64,000 bases of DNA from Anolis carolinensis. Its lineage: Eukaryota. Shown here piece after piece: positions 4,141 to 62,750 of this stretch. The DNA is taken from the NCBI RefSeq assembly GCF_035594765.1, contig NC_085842.1, forward strand, positions 43,500,782 through 43,564,781. Reading direction: 5' to 3'. The first letter of the stretch is position 1; every line of letters starts with the position of its first letter. The notes under the pieces were generated by a model. It saw only the letters and a program-made list of their open reading frames with translations. It did not search any database and had not been told where the DNA came from. The translations under genes were made by a program, and so were the position numbers.

Positions 4141-4452
4141 TCTGTTAGAAAAGGAATGAGCAGGCTGTGGCCTTCAACCACTTCCACTGCAATCTCTGGG
4201 TTTGGTGGAACTCCCCACACAGAAATTTGACCCAGCAGCTCAGCTGATCATTTGGGCTCTTGAAGGGGAAAACTCATGCTAACTAGGGAGTCTGGGAGGT
4301 GTAATTACAAAAAAAAAATCCCCACATTCTACAGTTTTATAGATGTTTTAAATCTACTTCCCATTTTTACCAACTTAGATGCCCCAGATGTTTTGAGAAT
4401 CACATGGGATTTTTTAGTTAACAGATCTTTTTGTTCTGCTTGTTCTCTTGGG

Positions 4453-4717
4453 TTTTTTTTTTTCGTGTCAGGAGCAACCGGAGTTGCTTCTGGAGTGAGA
4501 GAATTGGCCGTCTGCAAAGACGTTGCCCAGGGGACGCCCGGATGTTTTGATGTTTTTACCATCCTTGTGGGAGGCTTCTCTCATATCCCCGCATGGAGCT
4601 GGAGCTGATAGAGGGAGCTCATCCACATTCTCCCCAGGTGGGATTTGAACCTGGCAGCTTTCAGGTCAGTAACCCAACCTTCAAGTCACTTAGTCCACTA
4701 CACCATCTGGGGGCTCC
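4453..4717 (-). mobile_element. AnolisSINE2-like tRNA-derived SINE (Vingi-type body and tail)
   Basis: tRNA-like head with A/B boxes, tail gttgctcctgacacg(A)n, 12-bp TSD gttctcttgggt (4442-4453 / 4718-4729); homologous to 55977-56248. Confidence 0.9.
4496..4591 (-). ncRNA. HDV/CPEB3-like ribozyme fold inside the SINE
   Basis: P1 (GGGGAT/GTCCCC), P2 (TGAGAGAA/TTCTCTCA), P3 (GCC/GGC), L3 TCCCAC, GG-GCAAC, P4 CGTCT/AGACG and J4/2 GCCAA occur in HDV order. Activity untested. Confidence 0.6.
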
Positions 4718-6757
4718 GTTCTCTTGGGTAATGAAGAGATATCCGCAAACACTAAAAATGGTACAGTGTCTTCTTTGAAAAATAGCTTCAACTTCTTAAT
4801 AACAATATTCAACAGCATTCCAAAAATATCCTCCGCAATGTCACCCCTTAGAATTCAGTTCTATTTTTGCCTTTTCTTACTTTTTTGCCTTTTGTTACTG
4901 GCCCATCATCACTGACCTCACTTAATTATCTGTTAATGAGACCATCTTTAAATCGAAAGGCTGTATCTTTGCTGGGACTTAAACCAGATCTCAAGGGAGA
5001 CAGCAAGCTAGCGCAAGTTTCTTCTTCTTTTTGTTGTTGTTGAAAGAAAAGAATCTACAAAGTATTTTCCACAATCAATATAGATGTGATCATTATTTAT
5101 TAATTGTTCAATTTCAGGAACTGCTTTATCACAGAAATTGGGGTGGAGACCCAGGAGGTAATTAGAACTCTCCAAGTGCATACTGATGTTGGAAATACTC
5201 TGAATCTATAGGGCAATGAACTGGTTTCCAAGAACCTTGAGAGAGAAACCCAAGAATAGTGAATGTACTCTTCTGTGCTGGGAAGAAGTCATAGAGTGAC
5301 CAGATCTTTGTGCTCAGCAAATTTAGCAAGCATCAAAAGACAATACCAGAGACACCTGTGGAAGCAGAAAGACTTTTAGTAACTCTAGTTCAGGTGTCGT
5401 AAATACAAATAGAATTCTAGCTCAAGAAGATAGACCCTCCTTCTCCAAGGATAAAGGGATGCTGCATTCCTGTATGTTTTGATTGTTGGGTGGTGTATTT
5501 GTTTTGTGCAGCTTGCTAACGTCAAAATGCAGACCGGCAATTTATAAATGTAATGGGAAACTTGCAACAAATGGTCACCAAACACGGTTAAGAAAGTAGA
5601 CTGATAGACAAAGGAGAGAATTTTTGGAATGTACACAATCATTCTTGCTGGTATGCTATTACACAGTAGTGTAATTCAGTAAATGCATTTCTTAGCTACT
5701 TTGTAACTAGGTATATGTAAAGTTGGGTAATGTAACAGCTTATGTTTTATTCCAGCATATTCCAGAAAGACAGCTTGTGATTTAAAAAGAATAATATATC
5801 CTAAAACATATAAAAGGTAAACATTAAAATGGAATTTAATTATTCACAGTATTAAACAAATAAATAAATACTTTAAAAAACAAAAGGTAATTGCAAAAAT
5901 AAAAAAAATTGTTAATGATTGCCCTCTTTAGAAAGAAGTTTCAGTGTCTAAGGAAAGCCCTTTCTTATATCCCCACCAACCATGACTGAGAGAAGGGCTT
6001 CTCCTGGTGGTTATCAGGGCTTGGCACCTTATACAGCAAGACGCAGACTTCCCTATAATTGGGACTTGAACCATATCGGAAACACATCTGCCATACTAGG
6101 TTTGTTTCTTGCGAAACAATTGCATAGAATAGTGGCTTCAGAGTTTGCCTTTCAACTTGGCTTCTACAAAGGTTATAGACATAGCTGCACTACACTGTTA
6201 TTGATTTCATGCTACTTCAGTTGTTTGGGCTCATTCCTAAGGGAATTTGTGATTCATAGCTTGGCAATGTATTTCAGTTCTCTGCTACAGAATAACAGTC
6301 CACCTTCCTGAACTATAGTTCCCCAGGTATTCTGAGTGGTTTGTCTTCACAACATAATAAAGCTGTTTTAACTTTCAATCCTACTTTTCTCAGGCTACCC
6401 AAGTACTTCACTAAACTACAAATCCAAGGATTCCTTAGGTTGAAGCTGTGACAATGGTGTCAAACAGATAACAAATAACACAGATATATGTTTACTTTTC
6501 TTTTTAAATGATAGCCTAGCTAATAACATACACAGACATAAGGTGGCATGGCTTTCTAGCCATTTAAAACTAGTATAGCTTCCACTCCTTTCCTTATCAA
6601 CAATTTCAGAATTGCTCTTCATCTACTGCTTATTCATTCTTCTCCCGGCATACCAGCCAGTAGGAATTTCTAGTGTTCCTTTGATAGAGACACCCAAATA
6701 CATACATGCACATTCTTGGCATCAGTAACAGGAAAGGTTACCAGTTAACTCAGTTAC

Positions 6758-7247
6758 TAGGCTTGTGCAATTCAGATAGAAGTTGATCCGTTTTTGGTAT
6801 CTGAATTTTGTTGGGTACCCAGGTCAATTTTCAGGAGCCTCCTAAAAATTAGCTAATAGAAAAATCTGTTTTTGGCTAGGCAGCCGAAAGATGCAGGAAG
6901 ATCCAGCCAATTGGCAGCAATGGGGAACTTACAAGGCTCCCCTTTCTATTCCTGGGATCCTTTTCTTTTTTTTCTTTCATGAGGGCCTGGGTTTGAGGAA
7001 TGGGGTTGAGGAAGCACCCTTCTTGGGACCCTTTCCTTTCTTCCTTTCAAGAGAGTCTGGGTTTGAGGAATGGGGTTAAGGAAGCATGCACTGCGTACTC
7101 CTGAATAGAGGGAAAGAAGCCATACCCGGTAGCCACATGGGCTGTTTCAGGTGAAAAAATGGCAGCTGAGTCCTTACCGTTATGGCCTTCTGGAGAAGCC
7201 GAACAAGCCGAAGGGAAGTGGTTAAAGTGGGTCCGTGAACAAGTCTA
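6758..7247. mobile_element. hAT-type MITE with internal ~70-bp tandem duplication
   Basis: TIRs taggcttgtgca / tgaacaagtcta; 8-bp TSD tcagttac / tccgttac; duplicated unit at about 6952-7090. Confidence 0.7.
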
Positions 7248-18262: not shown

Positions 18263-18555
18263 AAGACAAAACACACATGCTTCCTCACAGATTAATTACC
18301 CTCCAGTTACACCAGTGGTTCCCAACCTTTTTTTGACCAGGGCCCACTTTGACCAGGGACCACTTGAACAGAGACCACTCTCCAACATTGGTATCATTGG
18401 TTTTTGGTCAACCTTAGATTTGGTTTGGTTATTGGAGGTGCTGATTCAGAAAACTGCATTGGATAGACCACATCAGCTCTAGTTTCTGATGCAGGACATA
18501 TGCCATCCAGTAGTCACCATCCGCTCACCCACAAAAAACATATTTAATAATCTAG

Positions 18556-20114
18556 AATCATAGAATCATAGAATCATAGAATAGTAGAGTTGGAAGAGAC
18601 CTCAAGGGCCATCTAGTCCAACCCCCCGCTAAGAAGCAGGAAATCGCATTCAAAGCACCCCCGACAGATGGCCATCTAGCCTCTGCTTAAAAGCCTCCAA
18701 AGAAGGAGCCTCCACCACGGCCCGGGGGAGAGAGTTCCACTGCCGAACAGCCCTCACAGTGAGGAAGTTCTTCCTGATGTTCAGGTGGAATCTCCTTTCC
18801 TGTAGTTTGAAGCCATTGTTCCGTGTCCTAGTCTGCAGGGCAGCAGAAAATAAGCTTGCTCCCTCCTCCCTATGACTTCCCCTCACATATTTGTACATGG
18901 CTATCATGTCTCCTCTCAGCCTTCTCTTCTGCAGGCTAAACATGCCCAGCTCTTTAAGCCTCTCCTCATAGGGCTTGTTCTCCAGACCCTTAATCATTTT
19001 AGTTGCCCTCCTCTGGACGCTTTCCAGCTTGTCAGCATCTCCCTTCATCTGCGGTGCCCAAAACTGGACACAGTATTCCAGGTGTGGTCTGACCAAGGCA
19101 GAATAGAGGGGGAGCATGACTTCCCTGGATCTAGACGTTATTCCCCTATTGATGCAGGCCAAAATCCCATTGGCTTTTTTAGCTGCCGCATCACATTGTA
19201 GGCTCATGTTTAACTTGTTGTCCACGAGGACTCCAAGATCTTTTTCGCACACACTGCTGTCAAGCCAGGCGTCCCCCATTCTGTATCTTTGATTTCCATT
19301 TTTTCTGCCGAAGTGAAGTATCTTGCATTTGTCCCTGTTGAACTTCATTTTGTTAGTTTCGGCCCATCTCTCTAGTCTGTCAAGATCGTTTTGAATTCTG
19401 CTCCTGTCTTCTGGAGTGTTAGCTATCCCTCCGAGTTTGGTGTCATCTGCAAACTTGATGATCGTGCCTTCTAACCCTTCGTCTAAGTCGTTAATAAAGA
19501 TGTTGAACAGAACCGGGCCCAGGACGGAGCCCTGCGGCACTCCACTTGTCACTTCTTTCCATGATGAAGACGACGCATTGGTGAGCACCCTTTGGGTTCG
19601 TTCGCTTAGCCAATTACAGATCCACCTAACCGTAGTTTTGTCTAGCCCACATTTTACTAGTTTGTTTGCCAGAAGGTCGTGGGGGACTTTGTCGAAGGCC
19701 TTACTGAAATCTAGATATGCTACATCCACGGCATTCCCTGTATCGACCCAACTCGTAACTCTATCGAAAAAAGAGATCAGATTAGTCTGGCATGACTTGT
19801 TTTTGGTAAATCCGTGTTGACTATTAGCAATGACCGCATTTGTTTCTAAGTGTTTGCAGACCACTTCCTTAATGATCTTTTCCAGAATCTTGCCTGGTAT
19901 TGATGTGAGGCTGACCGGACGGTAATTGTTTGGGTCGTTCTTTTTTCCCTTCTTGAAGATAGGGACCACATTCGCCCTCCTCCAATCTGCTGGGACTTCT
20001 CCTGTTCTCCAAGAACTCTCGAAGATGATTGCCAGTGGTTCTGAAATAACTTCCGCTAGTTCCTTCAATACTCTTGGATGTAGCTGATCTGGCCCTGGGG
20101 ACTTGAATTCGTTT
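18556..20114 (-). mobile_element. Young 5'-truncated CR1 LINE
   Basis: (TTCTATGA)n tail, open RT frame, CpGs retained, atctaga target duplication. Confidence 0.95.
18650..20068 (-). CDS. CR1 ORF2 reverse transcriptase (C-terminal 472 aa, 5'-truncated)
   Basis: [29 protein letters not shown] and KFADD motifs; no stops. Confidence 0.93.
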
Positions 20115-22440
20115 ATATCTAGATTCGACTATATCTAGAGCTGATATAGTCTATCCAATGCAATCATCAGCTCTGCAGAAAGGAGCAGAAATAAAATAAA
20201 TAAAATAAAGAGGAAGGAGGTTCGCAGACTGGATTTTCATTCTCATGGCCCACTCCTGGGTTGCGAATCACTGGGTTACACAACACCACTATGGAAAATG
20301 GATGAAAAGACTTCAGTACTTAAAGCAGGTGATTTTTCCTTATGCTGTATATCTGGGGCAGAGAGTTGTTGGTCTCTGTCCTGGTATATCTGGCTTTCTG
20401 CTAATGAAGAGGGGAAAATGAGAGCACCGTCTTCTAAACTTCTTCCTTCCTCCAAGAAATTGTCCTCCAGTTGCCAAATTTCTAGCTTTGCAGTAACACC
20501 AAGGAATGTATTATATTTTATTTTATTAATCCAACTAACCTCACTCAGCAAAAAAAAAAAAAAAAAAGGAAAAAAGCTATCTTGTGGTAATTAATTCCGT
20601 ATTCAGTATTTACTCCAATCTTTGGAGGGCCAGACCTCCCGCCACATTTACTCCTGAAAAGAAAAAAAAAATACTGTATTTTGACTCCAAAGTCTCCCAA
20701 ACACCCTCTAAACAACAGGAGGTCAGTTGAAATAATGTTCTGTTTCTCAAAAGAATTATCCTGGACCTAATTGTATTAATTGAGGGGGGAGGGGTAAATG
20801 AGATGAAAATGCCCCCAATCAAAAGAGGGCATGGGGAGGTAGAAATAAATTACACTTAGAGGCAGTAGACCTCTAAACATGGTAGAAATGCCCTCCACAC
20901 TTCCTAGAGGGCATTTGGGATTTTTTAAAAAACCTCCATGGGTCAAAACAACAACAACAACAACTCAACATGCCCTTCTGGTGCTCTGTAATGTTTTGGT
21001 GATATCAATGCCATCTGTAGTTCATCCTGGTATATTTCATTCAGTTCTTCACCAGATCAGTTCTGTTTGTTTCAAAAGGAAGATGGCTAACTAAAGATGG
21101 AAACACTACTGGAGCTGCTAATTTCCCTGGCTATAAACTGAAATTGATGAACCCTACATAAAACCCACCATCATGGTTATAATCATAGTTCTAAGAAAAA
21201 GATTTTCCCTTCTCACAGTCCTATAGGCTCTCCTTTATATGATTTCCAATACTCTATTTATTATAGCAGTGAGATACTGTAGTAAAAGAAACCCTCAATG
21301 GAGAATGAAAAAGATATTTCTTGAAACCTTAGGTGTGACCATCTACATTAAAAAAAAAACGTTCCAGTCTTTGTACACTGTTATTGTATCACATGCAAAT
21401 GACTTGAAGGATTTTAATCAAATTCAGAGGGGATATTTGAGAATTCTGGGCTTTGTCTTTTGGGGATTCACTAGAGTTCTCCAGCTGAAAATCCTAAGCT
21501 TCATTTGCCACAGAATGTCGCCATGACAACTAAAGGGGAATCACGGTGCTGTAAATGTATAATGTGAAAGAGTACCTGACCATCATCCCAGTAGATGCAT
21601 TAACTCTCTCTGTGTGTATCTTAAATCCTATTTACCAGTATTATTTCTAAATCTATGCATATTGGTTAGTACATGCAAAAATATGCTAATATGTTCCTTG
21701 TTCTTTCCTAGGCAACACATGAAAAACCTCCACTCATTATGGCGTCACAACATTGCTGCAAATGGAAAGCAATCTCTAGGAATGACTTCATGGCTAAGTT
21801 AATGTTCCTTAATCAGTCCTGTACTGTACTCCATTTTATAATTGCACCTCGTGGATTCCTTGTATCTCTGGTGCAGTTCAAGCAACCCTCACATTTGCCA
21901 TGGAAATGCTTGCAGCAAGGCGTGCTCCTTAGAGAGGCTACAGTTCAACAGCAGGGCAGAGCAGAGAGCGCTCTCAAACCACCCAACTGTGAATGATTAA
22001 TCTAAGGGAAGGATTGTAGCATTCTGCATCTTTTCTTTCCCATAGATAGACTCTAGGAATTACCTGCAGAAATGTGCTGGTCTTGACAGGTTCATTCCAT
22101 CATGGGATGTTGTTGATAGACACCAGAGAAGCAGTAATGGCATGAATGAGGAGAAAAACACACAAATCTTAACTGATGAGATTCAGGGACTAACAGCGGG
22201 ATCCTCTCAGCCACTCAGAGTATCTGACAGGGTGCAAACACACTTGCATCCAAAAAACCCAAAAGCACGTAGAATTGCATCAGCAATACAAAGTGACCCT
22301 TCCTATTGTTGTGGTCTGTGACCAAGGACTTACAGTACTCTGCCAGTAAATGTGGGTTAACATATACAATTCACTGGAAATGGTGGAAAACAAATGTGGA
22401 TGGGAAAGAAGATTGAACCTGCAATAAAGGGAGACTATGT

Positions 22441-38749: not shown

Positions 38750-39045
38750 TTACACACTTTGGACAAGCAACACGAGATTGCTGGTTGGCCTGTCTAGGAC
38801 AGACATTTTGTCCTTACTATGAGTCTTTACCTGAACTTTTCTAACCTTACCGTCAGGGCAAGGAAAGGTCTTTAGTATAATGCCCATAGGCCAGGTATAG
38901 CGGGGCAAGTCTTTGTCCTTTAGCAACACAAGGTTTCCCACCTTGACATTGTCCTTTGGGGTTTGCCAGAGTCTTCTGGTTGGAAGCTGGCTTAAGTATT
39001 CGGCCTTCCACCTCTTCCAGAAGTGGTTGGCTAAGGTCTGCACAT
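38750..39045 (-). pseudogene. BEL integrase C-terminal region (DUF5641-like), out of frame with the main ORF
   Basis: VQTLANHFWKRWKAEYL...VKVGNLVLLKD...WPMGII...DGKVRKVQVK. Confidence 0.85.
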
Positions 39046-42000
39046 GCAAAATTGGTGCCACAGTCCGACCAAATTGACTTAATTGGCCCTCTGAGGGCTA
39101 TAAACTTTTTCAAGGCATTTATGAATGATGAAGTGTCCATTCCCTCTACATCCTCAATATAGACAGTTCGTTTTGACAAACAAGTAAACAAAACCGCCCA
39201 TCTTTTATTATTTACAACACCACCCCTGGTTTTTCTGGTAACAATTTCCCAAGGACCAAACACATTAATTCCCACGTGGGAAAAAGGGGGGTCTGTCAAA
39301 GTCCTATCCTGAGGTAGTTCTGCTATTAACCGGTTTTGACAGTTTCGCCTAAGGTACCTGCATTTAACACATTTGAAAATACAACTGTTGACCAACCTTT
39401 TGGCATTAACTACCCACAGACCCTCGTTTCTAAGGGCTGCCTCAGTTAGAGTTCTACCCTGATGATGGATTCTTTTCTTTAGGGACCAGAGTCTTTTCCC
39501 TGCCGTGTGTCTATTGTTTGGCGAAGTGGGCTTATCTGACTTAAAGGGCAAAGGAGCTACCCAATTTCCCTCTGCACTTCGTGAGACTTGAGCATTCATA
39601 CTGTCCAAGAACCTTTGCTCATCTTTCGAGAGCGCTATGGCTTCGTCTCTCTCAGAGACTTTGAAGGTGGAGGAATACTCTGGAGTTATTCCTTGGCAGT
39701 AGACTGAGATGTGACTTAGGCAACTGCGCACAAGTGTAGGACGTCCACCTTTAAGCACCTGTGCTTGATTGGAGTCCAACGACGATGGTGAGTGCATCTT
39801 GTTTATGCACACTGGGCCTATGACTGTCCAGCCTAATGGCAATTGTTGTGCGATAGGTGCACCTGGAGGTCCTTTAACTTGATCGTTCACACAAAACAAG
39901 CTCGGGCAGTCCGAACCAAGCCAAAGGGCAATGTCCACATCTGGCTGAAATGCTGGTATAGCATTCTTCAATCGTCGCAAATGTGGATGAGCCTCCACAA
40001 CTTCTTTAGTTACAATTTGCTTTTTGTTCCGAGGGATGGAGGAACACTCAATCAGGTCTGGCAGCTTGAACTGTCTCTTCTGGTCGCAAGAGGAGACAAC
40101 AAAGCCAGATGCTATGCGACCCTGCAACTTCTTTTTTCCTGCACACGTAGTCATAGTGTAGTCGACCATCTTGGTTTTAAGGTCAAACATGCGGAAGAAC
40201 TCTGGAGTAGCCAGGGAGGCATCACTCTGTGAATCCAGGGCCACATAGAGTCTCTTTCTAAGCCAAGGGCTCTTGGCTGGATATACATCCGCTAGGCAGA
40301 TAGGATGACAAACTCTTAACTGTTGCGAGTCAGAACACAGCTCTGTACAGGCGACTGCTGAAACTTCCACCTGCATCTCTGGTGCGGCTGGCTTGTCGGT
40401 GTCTTCGACTGCTGACTTTTCTTTTGGTGTGGAGTTGTGCATTGCGGTGCAATGCTTGAGGCTGTTGCATTTCTCACACTTGACGATTTCATTGCAGTTA
40501 GATGCAAAGTGCGGAGTTGCTCCACAGCATCTAAAGCAGATTCCCTGCTTTTGAATTAGCTGTTGCCTTTCTTTGTATGTCTTCCTGCTAAACTCCCTGC
40601 AGTTGGCCAAGCTGTGAGGCTTTTGGTGAATAGGGCAAAGCAACTCTTTTACCTCTGACCTGGGTTCGTCAGTCTTGTGTTGAGTTTCGACTGCCTTTAC
40701 GCTGACAGGTCTATTGGCCTCTCTAGGTGGTTTCTTGTCCACTTCAGGTGCCTTCCCTGGATGGATCCCCTGATATAAGGTGGGCAGGCCCGTCTGTGGA
40801 TCATTCCTTTCCCTGGCCGCTCTGGTGATGAACTGTACCAGATGGGAAAACGGTGGGTACGCCTGAGAATGGGCCTCCTTGTAGTTAAAAACCTGTTTTC
40901 CCCAGTCTTCCTGCAGGGTGAAGGGAAGTTTGCCCAGAATCTGCCACTGGGACAGATGCTGATCGAGGCACTGCAGTCCAGGCAACTCTGGATTCTCCTT
41001 GGCCGACTCTAACTCTGCAAGAAGATCACTGAGGTCCCACAGGAGCTTGCAGTCCTTGAGCTTTAAGGTTGGGAACCTTTGCAGCTTGTCCATTAGAGAT
41101 GCTTCAATCTCCGTGCTAGCTCCATACCGCTGATGTAATCTGTCCCAAGCCTTTTCCAAGGCTTTGTCGGGGTCAGCTACATGGGCTGAATATATTCTCT
41201 TAACTTGAGAAGATGATGCTGGACCCAACCAGGCGCCTAGCAGGGTCAGCTCTTCTTCAGGCAACAACTTTAAGTCTCTAATTGCCCTCTTGAAGGTAAC
41301 CTTCCAGAGAAGGAACTCTTCAGGCTTGTCTGAAAACTTTTCAACTCCCTTGTCCTTGAGGTCTCTTTTGGGACTCCTAAGGATCGAGATGAGCTGGGAT
41401 TCTGGTGTCGATGGGAACAAGTGTGGCGTTGGCTGCTGTGGGGAGAAATCCCGTGCTCCTGGTGTCGACCTTTGACCCTTTGGAGGGAAGGCATCGTCTG
41501 TAGACGGACAGATGGTTCCTTTTGGACTTGCTTGTAGGGCCCAATTGGTGATAGGCTTTGATGGTTTGGCTGACTGCTCGGGAATCTTAGTAGGAGGCAC
41601 AGGCAAACTGAGCAAAGATGAGCTCCCCGCTATAACGCTCTGAACTTTAGCCAACCCGAAGGCAACTTTAGGGCCCTGCTCTGACCGCAGAGAGAAGTCT
41701 TCATGTTCCTCGTCAGAAAGCTGGCTGTTTAAACTATTAAGGTGCACAAGCACCTTGGAAGAAGGGTCCTGCCTCGGCAACTGACTTACATTTTCTTCTG
41801 TGAGTTGCCCACTTAGGACCTTGGCCAAAGTCTCAGCCTTTACCTTTTTGGCAGTAGCATCCATCCTTATTCTAAGCATTTCTATTTCACATTGCCTTTG
41901 GGCCTGTTCTATTTGGAGTCGCTGTTCCTCCTCTTTAAGGTGGAAAGTGTGGTCAGCTGCTTTTGCATCAGCTTCCGCCTCCGCAACCTTGCTCTGTAGC

Positions 42001-42581
42001 TCCAGACGTGCAGCCTCCTTAATGTGCAAGGCAGCTAGGGAAGAGATGGCACTCCCAGCAGCAGAAGACTTGCTAGAGTGGCTGTGTTTAGATGATGCAC
42101 GCTCCCTTAGTTTAGATACCTGGCTAGAGCGGTTGGACTTAAGACTAAGTGCCACAGCAGGTGATTTTAAAAGATTGGTCTCATGGCTGCATAAGGAAGC
42201 TAGGATTTCCCTCACCCTATTTTCTTTCTCATTAGTGTCAGCTAAAACACTCACTATTTCTAACTCTGAATCCTTGGCGTTAATGCGCTCGAGGACCTGG
42301 ACTATCTTAGACACCAAACCCCTCCAAAGACCGAAGGTCTCTTCAAGGTCTGTCTGTAATATGGATGGCACCCTTGTAATACCCAAGCTCTCTATTCTGC
42401 CCATTAATGTTACAATGCGCTCCCATGCCGAACCTAACCTCACATGGAGGAGCTCCTTTTCATCTATTAGATGGGCTAGCATCTTGGCTGAAGGGTGGTT
42501 TATCCTTTGGGGCCTTTCATTCCTAATTTCAGCCTCAGAAGGAGATATACCATTTATATCATCTTGAAAATGCATAGACAT
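38853..42581 (-). CDS. BEL/Pao Gag-protease-partial integrase polyprotein lacking RT and RNase H
   Basis: 1242-aa open frame: coiled coil, DUF1759-like KFSDKPEEFLLWK, knuckles CPIH..H..C / CFRC..H..C / CEKC..H..H, protease LDSQS, then direct jump to the integrase Zn finger HHQGR...CVKC and SDCGTNF. Confidence 0.9.
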   Translation of the reverse strand: MSMHFQDDINGISPSEAEIRNERPQRINHPSAKMLAHLIDEKELLHVRLGSAWERIVTLMGRIESLGITRVPSILQTDLEETFGLWRGLVSKIVQVLERINAKDSELEIVSVLADTNEKENRVREILASLCSHETNLLKSPAVALSLKSNRSSQVSKLRERASSKHSHSSKSSAAGSAISSLAALHIKEAARLELQSKVAEAEADAKAADHTFHLKEEEQRLQIEQAQRQCEIEMLRIRMDATAKKVKAETLAKVLSGQLTEENVSQLPRQDPSSKVLVHLNSLNSQLSDEEHEDFSLRSEQGPKVAFGLAKVQSVIAGSSSLLSLPVPPTKIPEQSAKPSKPITNWALQASPKGTICPSTDDAFPPKGQRSTPGARDFSPQQPTPHLFPSTPESQLISILRSPKRDLKDKGVEKFSDKPEEFLLWKVTFKRAIRDLKLLPEEELTLLGAWLGPASSSQVKRIYSAHVADPDKALEKAWDRLHQRYGASTEIEASLMDKLQRFPTLKLKDCKLLWDLSDLLAELESAKENPELPGLQCLDQHLSQWQILGKLPFTLQEDWGKQVFNYKEAHSQAYPPFSHLVQFITRAARERNDPQTGLPTLYQGIHPGKAPEVDKKPPREANRPVSVKAVETQHKTDEPRSEVKELLCPIHQKPHSLANCREFSRKTYKERQQLIQKQGICFRCCGATPHFASNCNEIVKCEKCNSLKHCTAMHNSTPKEKSAVEDTDKPAAPEMQVEVSAVACTELCSDSQQLRVCHPICLADVYPAKSPWLRKRLYVALDSQSDASLATPEFFRMFDLKTKMVDYTMTTCAGKKKLQGRIASGFVVSSCDQKRQFKLPDLIECSSIPRNKKQIVTKEVVEAHPHLRRLKNAIPAFQPDVDIALWLGSDCPSLFCVNDQVKGPPGAPIAQQLPLGWTVIGPVCINKMHSPSSLDSNQAQVLKGGRPTLVRSCLSHISVYCQGITPEYSSTFKVSERDEAIALSKDEQRFLDSMNAQVSRSAEGNWVAPLPFKSDKPTSPNNRHTAGKRLWSLKKRIHHQGRTLTEAALRNEGLWVVNAKRLVNSCIFKCVKCRYLRRNCQNRLIAELPQDRTLTDPPFSHVGINVFGPWEIVTRKTRGGVVNNKRWAVLFTCLSKRTVYIEDVEGMDTSSFINALKKFIALRGPIKSIWSDCGTNFACADLSQPLLEEVEGRILKPASNQKTLANPKGQCQGGKPCVAKGQRLAPLYLAYGHYTKDLSLP

Positions 42582-46443: not shown

Positions 46444-47906
46444 CTACAGTCTCATATTTTGGACTTTTTATGAAGAATGCAGGCATGATTAGCCATTCGA
46501 ACCACTTGCTTGCCTTTTTGGAAGTCCAAACTATCCAGGGCACTGTCCTTCAGTCCCACATTTCAAATGAGTTGATTCTCTTCTTGTTTGGTTTTCATAA
46601 CTATACCTAGAAATCAGACAGTAGGGTGAAGACAGTAGGGTGAAGTACCTCATATTTTTGGACTGTGGGGACGGGAAAGCTTAACAGAAAATTTTCTGAG
46701 TATGGCTTATGGGAAGCTGTAGACTGAACAAGCCTCATGCAATTTTATAGAAAAACTCAACTGACATATTTTAGAAAAGCTTAAAGGCAATACATTCTCC
46801 CCCATGCTGGTCCTTGGGCACATAACCATATGTTATGAAAACCGTGTATTTATGCATTCAGCAACTGAAGTTGGAAAGGCATTGCAATACATACATTCTG
46901 TTTTTCTTCTTTATAAGCTCTGTACAGAGATGACAAACAATAAAGAAATATGTGAATTAGAATTCTGTTGAGCAGATAGGGGAAAGAGCCATGCTAAGAG
47001 CATAAGTCACTGGAAATTTCAGAGTCTGTCAATGTTTAAAGAGAAGGAATCATGAATCACTCTGTGGAGTATCCTCTATGTAACCTCTTGACTTTCAGGT
47101 GTGAACTACCAAAATGGTACATTTTGTCATTCCTAGTACAGCGTATCTATTTATCCATATTGAAAAATCTTTAACTACTCCCAGCATTGCCAGGTGTGTG
47201 TACCTCTTTGACAGCTATGACCAATACCATATATTGGTACAAATGCAATGCAAATGTTTCACATAATGCAACTGCTAATAAAAATGTGGTATATGTGGCC
47301 ATTCTAAAATACATAGAGAAGAAGAGCTGTCATTTTTCCTATTAGCTTTGCACTTTTTTCAAAGCAAATATGAGTCATAAGACAGACATTTTCCTAGTGT
47401 TATTGGATCACCTTTAGATCTGATTTCCAAAGATATCATACTTTAAGAGGGTAAGCTTTAGTATCCTGAATCTTCATAAAAGGTTTTTATTTTATTTTTG
47501 GCCTAGTCCTGTCTTAAGGCATAGTGAAGAAACATTTATAGGAAATACATTCTTCCTTCCCTCTTTTTATTTTACCATTTTTCATTAATTTAGTTTGCCA
47601 TAGAGCACAGTTTGCTGTTTAAATTCAGGCATCAGTGGACTAAATTCAAACATATGTAGAAATGGGAAATATGGTGGCATGGATCTGCCTGACTTTAGCA
47701 TTCAATTATTTACCTTAGCACTTTAGGATTTTGTCTAGTTCCTTTGTAGGTCCTCCAAGTCCTAGTCTTCTGATTTCTTGGGTGCAGTCTGCATTCTGAT
47801 TTATGACTGTATGGGAAATCTTGAATTGTTTCAATGTCTTCATCATTTACTTTAAAATTGTGTTAGTCATCTATGGTCATTATTTTTCTTTTCTTAATGT
47901 TTCAAT

Positions 47907-48214
47907 GGAGCCCTGGTGGTGTAGCGGGTTAAACCGCTGACCCAAAGGTTGGGGTGTGAATCCAGGGAGCAGGGTGAGCTCCCACTATTAGCCCCAGCTT
48001 CTGCCAAACTAGGAGTTCAGAGACATATAAATGTGAGTAGATCAATAGGTACTGCTCCGGGAAGGTAACAGAACTACATGCAGTCATGCCAGCTACATGA
48101 CCTTGGAGGTGTTTATAGACAACACCGGTTCTTCGGCCTAGAAATGGAGATGTGCACCAACCCCCACAGTTGGGAACGACTAGACCTAATGTCAGGGGAA
48201 AACCTTTACCCTTA
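47907..48214 (+). mobile_element. Sauria SINE
   Basis: Head, body and tail; taatgttt on both flanks. Confidence 0.9.
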
Positions 48215-53949: not shown

Positions 53950-55976
53950 AATCACATTTCTGTTTGGTTTTTTAAATGCACTGTCTCTGACATGGCAAGA
54001 ATGACTAAAAGAAAATGCTGAAATGGTAAAGGATTATTCACTTAGAGTTTGAATTTTTTCCTCCAAATCCTCAGGGACAATGTATACATATATATCTCAT
54101 CAATTTTCTCTAAGATTGACAGTCCTCAGGGCCTGGACCTGAGTTTCCAGTTTTTGTGGATCATCTCCAGTTTTGGTGAGCTCTGCTCCAGGCAAAGACA
54201 TGCATTCAGAAACTTTTTACTATTTCCAAACTTTTTGTGACCCCAACATTGAGCAAAGGGGTCAAGACCCCATTTGGGTTCAGGACCCACAGATTAAGAA
54301 GCAGTTAGCACCAGAGATCAACAATTCTCAAGGCTCAGTGGATGGATTGAAGAAACTTGGAATACTCAGGAGGTCCATGCATTTTTGTAGTCTGCGTCCT
54401 CTTTCCTCTGTAGTTCCATTGTGGTACCAGGGATCACCCTCTACTCTGCGCAACTCTGCATGAATTTTCTGCCTAGATGCAAATATGATAGATTAAATGT
54501 TCCTTATTATGTCTCCCTAAATAAGTGAGAAGGAATAATATCCTCATTTCGCCTTGATTTTGGAACAGCTTCTCTAGTTAATTGTTCTGCCTAAATTTCT
54601 AAGCAGAAAAGATATTGTATTTGTATACATGTATGTAAGCAACAATGGTTGATATTTAATGTGTAATGTTTAGTTTTACTGTGTTAGATTTAGTGTTAGA
54701 TTAACATTATGTATGTACAACAATTAAAAATGCATATATAATTAAGTAGCTGATGTAAAATATTGGTGCTGTGGGTGCAAAGATAAATCTAACTTCATAT
54801 AATCTTCAAACATGGAGACTTGAAAAAGGCCATAAACAATTGCTCACATGTCGACCAGTGCTCTGACCAAAGGGGCAAAATCCTAATTGTTCATCCCACC
54901 AAATTGCAAATTTCAAAACAACAATAACAACACTATTTTTTAATTGGCCACCTGTCCTTATGGCTCAAGGTAGGGCAAAACATAGTTAAAATTCATCATA
55001 CTAAAATACATTCCTTAAAAGTACATATTTAAACATACATAGGTTAAAATACATAGAACAAAATTAAAACTATAAATATAGAATGTGATTTTTAAATCCA
55101 TAGTTAAAAATGATGTTTCTTTAGCACAGCATTTATGGAGAAACATGTGAAGTTGTAGACAACCAGATGTCGCTCCCATCACAGTAAGCAAATGTATCCC
55201 CAAAATCATGAATGATGGTCTGACAAAACATCTGAAGGGTCACAAGGGCTTTGCCCATAGTTGAATAGCTAATTTTAGTTAAGGTAGGATATAAATACAT
55301 TTTCCAGGTTTCCATCCAGTCAAGACTAAGACCATCTGCAAAGAGGATAGACAAGATTTTATCCTATTATTTTATTTTACAGTGATGGTATCTTGAGTTG
55401 AAATCGGTGGTGATAAATCGCCTGCCCTTTATACTTGGAGCATTCATTGGGGTGTTTGGTTGTTTTTCTCCCTTCAGGCCTTGTTTATGTTCAACTGATT
55501 TCATCTAATCTCTCGCCCCATTCCTGCACCTACACTGCCACTTGCAGATCCTAATCACAGCTTTGATCTCAGAGGAAATGTTATCATTTAGAAACAGAGG
55601 AAAGAGGGTGAAGGTCAAGAGGGAGAAGAGAAATATTTATTTATGGCAATTAACCCATTGTTAGTCCACCTGTAATGAGGGACCATCATTTCAAAGGAAA
55701 GAACAATGTCCTAAATTATATTACAAATCCCAGTTATGATAGAAATGGAATTCTATAGATGGTTTAATGAGTCTACCTTAGCTAGGATTGTCCAATATAG
55801 GATTCCATATTCACCCACTGTCTTGATTTGGCAGAGACAGTTCAGATTACAGTCAGCCTTCCATTCACTGGGGTTAAGGAAATTTTCACTGGGGTGAAAG
55901 TGAAAAATGACAAATAAATAATACATCTCTAGGAATTTCTAGTTTTTTCAGAACATCTTTACGATCAACCTTCAAT

Positions 55977-56248
55977 GGAGCCCCTGATGGCGTAGTGGAC
56001 TAAAGCCTCATGACTTGAAGGTTGGGTTGCTGACCTGAAAGCTGCCAGGTTCGAATCCCACTCGGGGAGAGCGCGGGGTCCCTCCATGCAGGGACCCATG
56101 CAGGGACATGAGAGAAGCCTCCCACAAGGATGGTAAAAACATCAAAACATCCGGGCGTCCCCTGGGCAACGTTCTTGCAGACAGCCAATTCTCTCACTCC
56201 AGAAGCGACTCAAGTTGCTCCTGACACAAAAAAAACAAACAAAAAAAA
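55977..56248 (+). mobile_element. AnolisSINE2-like SINE
   Basis: tggcgtagtgg A box, ggttcgaatcc B box, gttgctcctgacac(A)n tail. Confidence 0.9.
56101..56196 (+). ncRNA. HDV/CPEB3-like ribozyme fold inside the SINE (more decayed copy)
   Basis: P2 56109-56116 / 56189-56196, P3 56117-56119 / 56154-56156, P1 3' strand 56157-56163, GGGCAAC 56164-56170, GCCAA 56184-56188. Confidence 0.55.
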
Positions 56249-62019: not shown

Positions 62020-62750
62020 ATCAAGTCCAACCCCCAGCCAAGAAGCAGGAAGATGACATTCAAAGCACCCCTGACAGATGGCCATCCAGCCTCTGCTTAA
62101 AGGACTCCAAAGAAGGAGCCTCAACCACACTCCGGGACAGAGAGTTCTGGTGCTGAACAGCTCTCACAGTTAGGAAGTTCTTCCTGATGTTCAGATGGAA
62201 TCTCTTTTCCTGTAGTTTGAAGCCATTGTTCCGCATCCTAGTCTCCAGGGCAGCAGAAAACAAGCTTTCCCCCTCCTCCCTATGACATCCCCTCACATAT
62301 TTATACGTGGTTATCATGTCTCCTCTCAGCCTTCTCTTTTGCAGGCTAAACATGCCCAGCTCTTTAAGCCGCTCCTCATAGGGCTTGTTCTCCAGACCCT
62401 TGATCATTTTAGTCACCCTCCTCTGAACACTTTCCAGCTTGTCAATGTCTCCTTTCAATTGCAGTGCCCAGAATTGGACACAGTATTCCAGATGTGGTTT
62501 GACCAAGGCAGAATAGAGGGGTAGCATGACTTTCCTGGATCTAAGCACTAGACTCCTGTTTATGCAAGCCAAAATCCCATTGGCTTTTTTAGCTGCCACA
62601 TCACATTGTTGGCTCATGTTTAACTTGTTGTCCACAAGGACTCCAAGGTCTTTTTCGCATGTACTGCTGTCGAGCCAGGCATTGACCCCCATTCTGTATC
62701 TTGCATTTGTCCCTGTTGAACTTCATTTTGTTAGTTTTGGCCCATCCTCT
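62020..62750 (-). mobile_element. 5'-truncated CR1 LINE (ORF2 C-terminus open at 62060-62692)
   Basis: 210-aa frame highly similar to the C-terminus of the 18650-20068 ORF. Confidence 0.92.

Follow-up and report, generated by a model that had tools for sequence, protein, structure and literature searches.

A delta-type ribozyme-like module, probably disarmed, inside a high-copy SINE of Anolis carolinensis

In delta-type (HDV-like) ribozymes, P1 is a 7-bp helix whose pair at the cleavage site is a G.U wobble or, in some members, A-U or A.C. Their L3 is short, 7–8 nt long (UCCNNGN), and gives the CC for P1.1 plus the U20/G25 pair. The HDV genomic ribozyme, the Rfam family RF02682 and the ribozymes found at the 5′ end of LINEs (R2, RTE, L1Tc/Ingi) all follow the order P1-P2-P3-L3-P3′-P1′-P1.1-P4-J4/2-P2′. 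The same order is found in a module located within a SINE of Anolis carolinensis, together with the same core letters, i.e. GCC UCC, GGC, a P1′ ending in U, GGGCAAC and a GCNAA containing the candidate catalytic C. Minimal HDV-like members have a short P4 like that of the anole module, and the P4 of locus L098 is nearly identical to it (GUCU..AGAC). As in the LINE 5′ ribozymes, the anole module lies in sequence described as a LINE-derived 5′ end. However, it differs from HDV-like ribozymes by a 25-nt stem-loop in L3 and by a C.U in place of G.U or A-U, and whereas the LINE ribozymes stand at the 5′ end of their unit, the anole module is internal, ~125 nt downstream of a Pol III head. No precedent with tested activity was found for so large an L3 insertion beside the active site.

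Other described systems combine some of these characters. In trypanosomatids, the non-autonomous NARTc, RIME and SIDER elements inherit and spread the 5′ HDV-like ribozyme of the Ingi group (PMC3383444, PMC4035085). They carry the L1Tc/Ingi Pr77 at their very 5′ end, where it is active and doubles as a promoter, in contrast to the anole module, which is placed behind a Pol III head and is devoid of the cleavage-site pair. The CPEB3 ribozyme is likewise vertebrate, intronic and delta-type, but it is a single-copy conserved locus whose cleavage site has a G.U, its L3 is short and its core differs, lacking GGGCAAC; in terms of letters, CPEB3 is much further from the anole module than HDV and RF02682 are. 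The B2 SINE is a case of a SINE transcript with a self-cleaving RNA, reported to be active, but its fold is unrelated, being neither LINE-derived nor delta-type. The hammerhead SINE Sm-alpha of Schistosoma, also reported to be active, is neither LINE-derived nor delta-type.

In A. carolinensis itself, the SINE2-1_ACar and SINE2-1B_ACar elements start with a head of tRNA type containing A and B boxes, reach a very high copy number and come in two tail subfamilies, as observed here for our SINE; their body and tail are described as corresponding to Vingi ends. Their middle part matches the 5′ end of the LINE Vingi-2_ACar, and their 3′ part its 3′ end (Kojima 2018, PMC5786205, citing Kojima 2011 for the origin of SINE2-1_ACar). 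A second study (PMC3747384) also describes SINE2-1_ACar-type elements as a tRNA-type head followed by Vingi-2_ACar-like middle and 3′ regions. The bipartite LINE origin of the SINE body, which the earlier note on this DNA had suspected to be already described, is indeed published. It is from this literature, and from it only (PMC5786205, PMC3747384), that we take the derivation of the body from a Vingi LINE 5′ end, and our SINE was matched to SINE2-1_ACar by published description. Bipartite non-autonomous Vingi elements are known to retain the 5′ and 3′ ends alone (PMC5786205). In the same work, Vingi is not listed among the ribozyme-bearing LINE clades, and it is pointed out that the head of a SINE would be truncated by a 5′ ribozyme (Kojima 2018, PMC5786205). 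Table 2 of that work gives Vingi-2_Gav 2–74 and SINE2-1_AMi 61–127. The published descriptions of SINE2-1_ACar make no mention of a ribozyme fold, and our literature search found no paper that ties Vingi, Anolis or lizards to delta-type ribozymes, nor any that proposes the ribozyme reading.

The SINE copy bearing the module (copy A, 4453–4717, minus strand) was identified in a 64-kb window, i.e. the whole stretch of A. carolinensis DNA that was analysed. It is composed of a Pol III-type head (4624–4717), a linker of 32 nt between head and module (4592–4623), the HDV-like module (4496–4591), a LINE-type 3′ tail of 32 nt (4464–4495) and a tail of 11 A (4453–4463). The 3′ tail contains a stem-loop (AGCAAC / GTTGCT, 4473–4488, −10.6 kcal/mol). 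Box A (TGGTGTAGTGG, 4695–4705) and box B (GGTTCAAATCC, 4641–4651) could both be read in the head, in agreement with the earlier note, which placed the module in a SINE behind a Pol III head. Neither ARAGORN nor Rfam called a tRNA in the head, which is referred to as tRNA-derived because of its A and B boxes and of the literature. Copy A is bordered by 11-bp target-site duplications (CCCAAGAGAAC, upstream at 4718–4728 and identical downstream at 4442–4452, minus strand); these duplications and the A tail indicate a LINE-mediated insertion. It differs from the family majority at 5 of 265 positions (~2%). Copy A is a young and full-length product of retrotransposition, belonging to a high-copy A. 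carolinensis SINE, and the locus itself is ordinary, corresponding to one neutral SINE insertion.

A second copy in the window (copy B, 55974–56240, plus strand, with its module at 56101–56196) is older and 85% identical to copy A. Between the two copies, identity amounts to 94.8% in the module, 87.5% in the tail, 85% in the head and 52% in the linker. The module would be the best-conserved segment, but with two copies compared this conservation signal is only a hint. Another tRNA-headed SINE family is represented at 47905–48100 (plus strand), and its post-head linker (GAGCTCCC..CTAT.AGC.CCAGCT) matches positions 4596–4623 of copy A. Judging from this match, a head or linker module is common to the two families, whose bodies are different. 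Further copies of the SINE of copy A were found in two loci of assembly GCA_035594765.1, L139 (7031–7212, plus strand) and L140 (7411–7624, minus strand), where they lie in sense inside Raftlin-domain and bHLH-PAS genes. The L139 copy has a 41-nt internal deletion (7116–7169, plus strand) that begins right behind GGGGAC, reaches the 3′ strand of the L3 hairpin and removes P2, P3 and that hairpin. The SINE 3′ tail (4479–4494, minus strand) exists in two subfamilies, one with an extra TGCAGTTTCTCAAG-type insert; this variant gives a loose end at 4482 in 4/4 of the sequencing runs analysed below and is also present in the L140 copy.

No Vingi piece was found in the 64-kb window, where Vingi-type 3′ tails are present in the two SINE copies only, and 49 kb of further anole DNA, reached through relatives of the BEL/Pao ORF described below, yielded as SINE copies only the two decayed ones of L139 and L140, and the 5′ end of a LINE was absent from it. 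An RT ORF at 18650–20068, the only LINE ORF of some size in the window, was considered as a Vingi seed and rejected, its 3′ end being of CR1 type. It belongs to one of two CR1-type LINE remnants (18530–20128 and 62063–62722, both on the minus strand). The former includes a 472-aa RT ORF (RVT_1, E 3e-35) and has a 3′ end of the GGTTGGACTAGATGGCCC type, with a (ATTCTATG)n microsatellite behind it; the latter, at ~62 kb, includes a second RT fragment of the same CR1 kind. The window also contains, at 38853–42581 (minus strand), an intact 1242-aa BEL/Pao-like ORF with weak matches to DUF1759 and integrase. Its identity to A. carolinensis LOC134292487 is 92%, and its exact product has no record in the assembly collection.

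The module itself is 96 bases long and located in the middle of the SINE. On the minus strand, from 4591 to 4496, P1, P2, P3, P1.1, P4, GGGCAAC and the GCCAA of J4/2 can all be read in HDV order. The base facing the U of P1 is a C (4591), where canonical ribozymes have a G (or an A). It is followed by the 5′ strand of P1 (GGGGAT, 4590–4585), the A of J1/2 (4584), the 5′ strand of P2 (TGAGAGAA, 4583–4576), the GCC of P3 (4575–4573) and the start of L3 (TCCCACAA, 4572–4565). An extra L3 hairpin of 25 nt comes next (4540–4564), made of a 5-bp stem (GGATG 4564–4560 / CATCC 4544–4540) and an A-rich loop of 15 nt (4559–4545), and a single G (4539) separates it from the GGC of P3′ (4538–4536). The 3′ part consists of P1′ (GTCCCCT, 4535–4529), the GG of P1.1 (4528–4527), whose partner is the CC of L3, a GCAA (4526–4523), P4 (CGTCT 4522–4518, loop TTGC, AGACG 4513–4509), J4/2 (GCCAA, 4508–4504, with the candidate catalytic C at 4507) and P2′ (TTCTCTCA, 4503–4496). 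Each of the HDV-like elements listed in the earlier note was thereby recovered on the minus strand, at the positions and in the order proposed. A script counting the pairs in register gave 6/7 for P1, 8/8 for P2, 3/3 for P3, 2/2 for P1.1, 5/5 for P4 and 5/5 for the L3 hairpin, the sole P1 mismatch being the C.U at the cleavage-site pair. The GCCAA of J4/2 is retained in copies A, B and L140, and is GCCAG in L139.

The organization of L3 departs from a closed loop of 7–8 nt. It totals 34 nt, including the 5-bp hairpin, and consists of a bulge of 7–8 nt on the 5′ side (UCCCACAA) followed by the extra stem-loop. It includes the U, the CC and the G adjoining P3′. The CC of the bulge pairs as P1.1, the extra stem coming after it, and U4572, opposite G4539, can extend the 3-bp P3 in what may be the equivalent of U20/G25, a pair that carries on the P3 stack in HDV (PMC1874588).

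We then examined the module at the level of the SINE family, using Logan contigs from four A. carolinensis runs aligned to positions 4420–4760 at 80% likeness. Between 19,000 and 48,000 contig pieces per run fell on the SINE, indicating that this family is very abundant. At position 4591, across the four runs (summed contig depth), C accounts for ~78% and T for ~22%, and G never reaches 5%. The T, also present at the equivalent position of the L139 and L140 copies, can be read as CpG decay of the C. Since C or T occupies 4591 family-wide, the missing G.U is to be ascribed to the SINE master, not to decay of copy A. The two oddities of the fold singled out in the earlier note, namely the C instead of G opposite the U of P1 and the L3 hairpin, are both real and family-wide in this pile-up.

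Within the module, copy A departs from the family majority at two positions only, 4585 and 4518. The majority has GGGGAC at 4585, so that the corresponding P1 pair is G-C and not G.U, and C at 4518, leaving a P4 of 4 bp with a 6-nt loop. The P1 strand GGGGAT and the 5-bp P4 initially described hold for this copy but do not extend to the family, in which C and not T prevails at 4518 and the T at 4585 is private to copy A. The other common variants of the module are mostly CpG transitions (4590/91, 4539/40, 4535/36, 4521/22, 4510), and the remaining ones are low-frequency non-CpG transitions (4514, 4517, 4559, 4588) and a one-base deletion (4553). No covariation was detected within the SINE family, with no compensatory variant among the common variants in the contigs; the family is too young and star-like to be informative in this respect. 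With nearly all variants being CpG transitions, the fold is backed by pattern and not by compensatory change. One family variant, revealed by a loose end at 4545, has the same L3 stem with a loop of 6 nt instead of 15 nt, which lends mild support to the L3 stem behaving as a unit.

The depth of the pile-up remains high up to 4623, without a drop at 4591, because the linker is common to the other SINE family (47905–48100). The possibility that the depth over 4592–4623 corresponds to LINE-derived sequence upstream of the cleavage site was ruled out, since this linker is shared with that other family. Among the best-supported loose ends listed, none is located at 4590/4591, which is weak evidence against residual cleavage.

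Searches with exact 24-mers had no match in viral and metagenome contigs, and the ORF running across the module shares words with no database protein. The core letters of the module were used as a search pattern (GCCUCC..GGC..(N6)U-GGGCAAC..GCNAA). In IMG/VR, this pattern matched 18 loci, all coding-sequence accidents, and the helices are present in 0/18. In JGI/ENA metagenome contigs it matched at least 120 loci, and among the matches listed 18 loci, representing 10 distinct sequences, combine a fully paired 7-bp P1 with a P2 of 6–7 bp. These ten ribozymes, among the matches listed, are of the classical delta type with a 7-nt L3 (UCCNNGN), and two of them pass the gathering score of Rfam RF02682. 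The L3 hairpin is absent from all the genuine delta ribozymes (bacterial or phage-type) among the metagenome matches listed, and in the ten distinct ones the closing pair is always G.U or A-U, never C.U. The A-U pair replaces the textbook G.U in six of the ten (L029, L030, L031, L068, L092 and L100). The sole listed pattern match with a long L3 (L116) was discarded as a chance match, its P1 being made nearly entirely of G.U pairs. One metagenome delta-type ribozyme (L022, 531–611, plus strand; RF02682, 50 bits) is located 4 nt upstream of a tRNA (616–688), on a contig carrying four tRNAs. Such a ribozyme-then-tRNA arrangement is that of the theta ribozymes of gut phages (PMC10879173).

The ten metagenome ribozymes served to build a covariance model of 68 positions, R1, using P1, P3 and P4. 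When the 64-kb window was searched (128 kb of strand), the two SINE copies ranked first, and the next match scored 7.6 bits. R1 aligned to copy B over all 68 positions (56102–56195, 25.7 bits, E 4e-4), with a 31-nt insertion in L3, and to copy A over the 3′ half only (23.6 bits, E 1e-3); these E-values are inflated, as the letters by which the training set was picked are, by design, also those of the lizard sequence, and the independent part is the helices. We also shuffled the letters of the module 200,000 times, leaving those of the core in place. A P1 of at least 6 bp was obtained in 0.8% of the shuffles, a P2 of 8 bp in 0.008% and a P4 of at least 4 bp in 0.8%; all three were obtained at once in 0/200,000.

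An ordinary SINE body that can merely be drawn as an HDV-like fold would account for several of our observations. No Rfam match reaches gathering anywhere in the window, the best score for the module being 10.9 bits with RF02682, for a cut-off of 44 and over the 3′ half only. For the module, the nested minimum-free-energy structure does not stand out (z = −0.87), and a loose helix-only descriptor returned 83 matches in the window, mostly spurious, and was dropped. However, such a z-score is to be expected of a pseudoknot. Taken as two nested halves, the delta fold has about −21 and −19 kcal/mol, compared with −29.5 kcal/mol for a rival nested fold. Furthermore, a chance resemblance would have to produce P1, P2 and P4 together, which the constrained shuffles never did, from core letters that are rare even without helices and that come without them in every IMG/VR match. 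It would also have to explain how R1 singles out exactly the two SINE copies in 128 kb of strand. We consider a chance origin of the resemblance highly improbable, and it is effectively refuted. The shuffles, the metagenome core matches and the ranking by R1 uphold the claim that the architecture goes beyond chance: the module is a genuine delta-type (HDV-like) double pseudoknot, which both the Rfam models and the classical descriptors miss.

Other explanations concern the activity and the role of this fold. The SINE module could still self-cleave, slowly or conditionally, either with a 6-bp P1 starting from the first G of GGGGAC or with a C.U pair. The family majority indeed retains the CC/GG of P1.1, the C of J4/2, GGGCAAC, and U20 with the G adjoining P3′, and in HDV, C ranks second among the bases at −1 (U > C > A > G, PMC1874588). 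The L139 and L140 copies, both sense and genic, suggest in addition that sense intronic copies are tolerated, though both are decayed. In HDV, however, the G1:U37 wobble is specifically required (PMC1874588), and +1 is paired in 10/10 of the distinct genuine ribozymes among the matches listed. Moreover, cleavage would sever the promoter from the body, preventing amplification to tens of thousands of headed copies (PMC5786205), and the lack of loose ends at 4590/4591 among the best-supported ones listed points, weakly, in the same direction. Persistent self-cleavage is, in our opinion, quite unlikely. It would imply that SINE or intronic transcripts are cut just downstream of the head, yielding head-less RNAs, and that thousands of introns harbour a latent RNA-processing site. 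We are just as doubtful that the module is not dead in the broader sense, with tens of thousands of SINE copies, many of them sense-intronic, carrying a delta-type ribozyme. Such a module would either cleave slowly despite its C.U or stand one transversion short of the canonical G.U. Combined with the Vingi 5′ end, it would constitute a new subclass of delta ribozymes, with an L3 opened by an extra stem beside the active site.

Alternatively, the module may never have been catalytic in this lineage, the delta-like pseudoknot and its hairpin being a protein-binding or 5′-protecting element with an architectural likeness only. A role in cis of the 5′ end is suggested by the bipartite Vingi elements, which keep just both ends (PMC5786205), and ribozyme folds have been reported to protect the 5′ ends in R2-derived vectors (PMC13708176). 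The whole module is kept although the SINE needs neither promoter nor processing, and it is the best-conserved part between copies A and B. Nevertheless, the retained letters are those of the catalytic core, including the C of J4/2 and the P1.1 pairs, which a mere scaffold would not need, and L1Tc, of the related Ingi clade, bears an active 5′ HDV-like ribozyme (PMC3185411). A purely structural origin is accordingly given a low probability.

We favour the explanation that the module derives from a ribozyme and was disarmed in the SINE master, and is probably a disabled relic of the ribozyme of the partner LINE. In this same explanation, and with the same confidence as the whole, the host SINE is of the SINE2-1_ACar type, with a Pol III head, a linker, a Vingi 5′ end and a LINE 3′ tail. 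The derivation from a ribozyme is indicated by the retained letters, which are those of the catalytic core in proven delta-type ribozymes. Cleavage should be crippled by a C.U pair as well as by a 6-bp P1 whose U stays unpaired. Our data establish the anatomy, a fold beyond chance, the C throughout the family, the copy number and the target-site duplications; we infer that catalysis was lost in the SINE module, that the ribozyme would be active in the LINE and that the disarming had a selective reason.

In the proposed scenario, the LINE ribozyme would cut off the upstream transcript, so that the LINE RNA begins at +1, whereas a Pol III-driven SINE would stay a heritable unit only with its head joined to its body. 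As the head must stay attached, only a fusion in which the +1 G had been lost or replaced could have founded a SINE family. The module would thus have been born disarmed, the first base of the LINE having been lost or replaced. Since then, it would ride along as a passenger that cleaves very poorly or not at all; its retention may be due to a use of the fold by the LINE machinery, as suggested by the bipartite Vingi derivatives, which retain both ends. Two alternatives had been envisaged in the earlier note, a ribozyme disabled so that the head stays on and a latent ribozyme spread by the SINE. The fixed C/T at 4591 fits the former, and nothing in our data supports the latter.

A possible self-cleavage of Vingi 5′ ends is also of practical interest, since a Vingi element of the same lizard is under development as a gene-writing vector that retains its native 5′ UTR (PMC13708176). 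A 2026 review of Vingi-1-based gene writers describes the native 5′ UTR as retained and leaves a ribozyme unmentioned. If our explanation is correct, the L3 loop beside the active site would tolerate a whole extra helix, which would bear on the design of ribozyme searches. Vingi would join the LINE clades with delta-type ribozymes. The SINE would represent a natural case of the principle put forward by Kojima (2018), in which a SINE borrows the 5′ ribozyme of a LINE only once it does not cut, with nearly the whole ribozyme retained and the cleavage-site pair alone missing.
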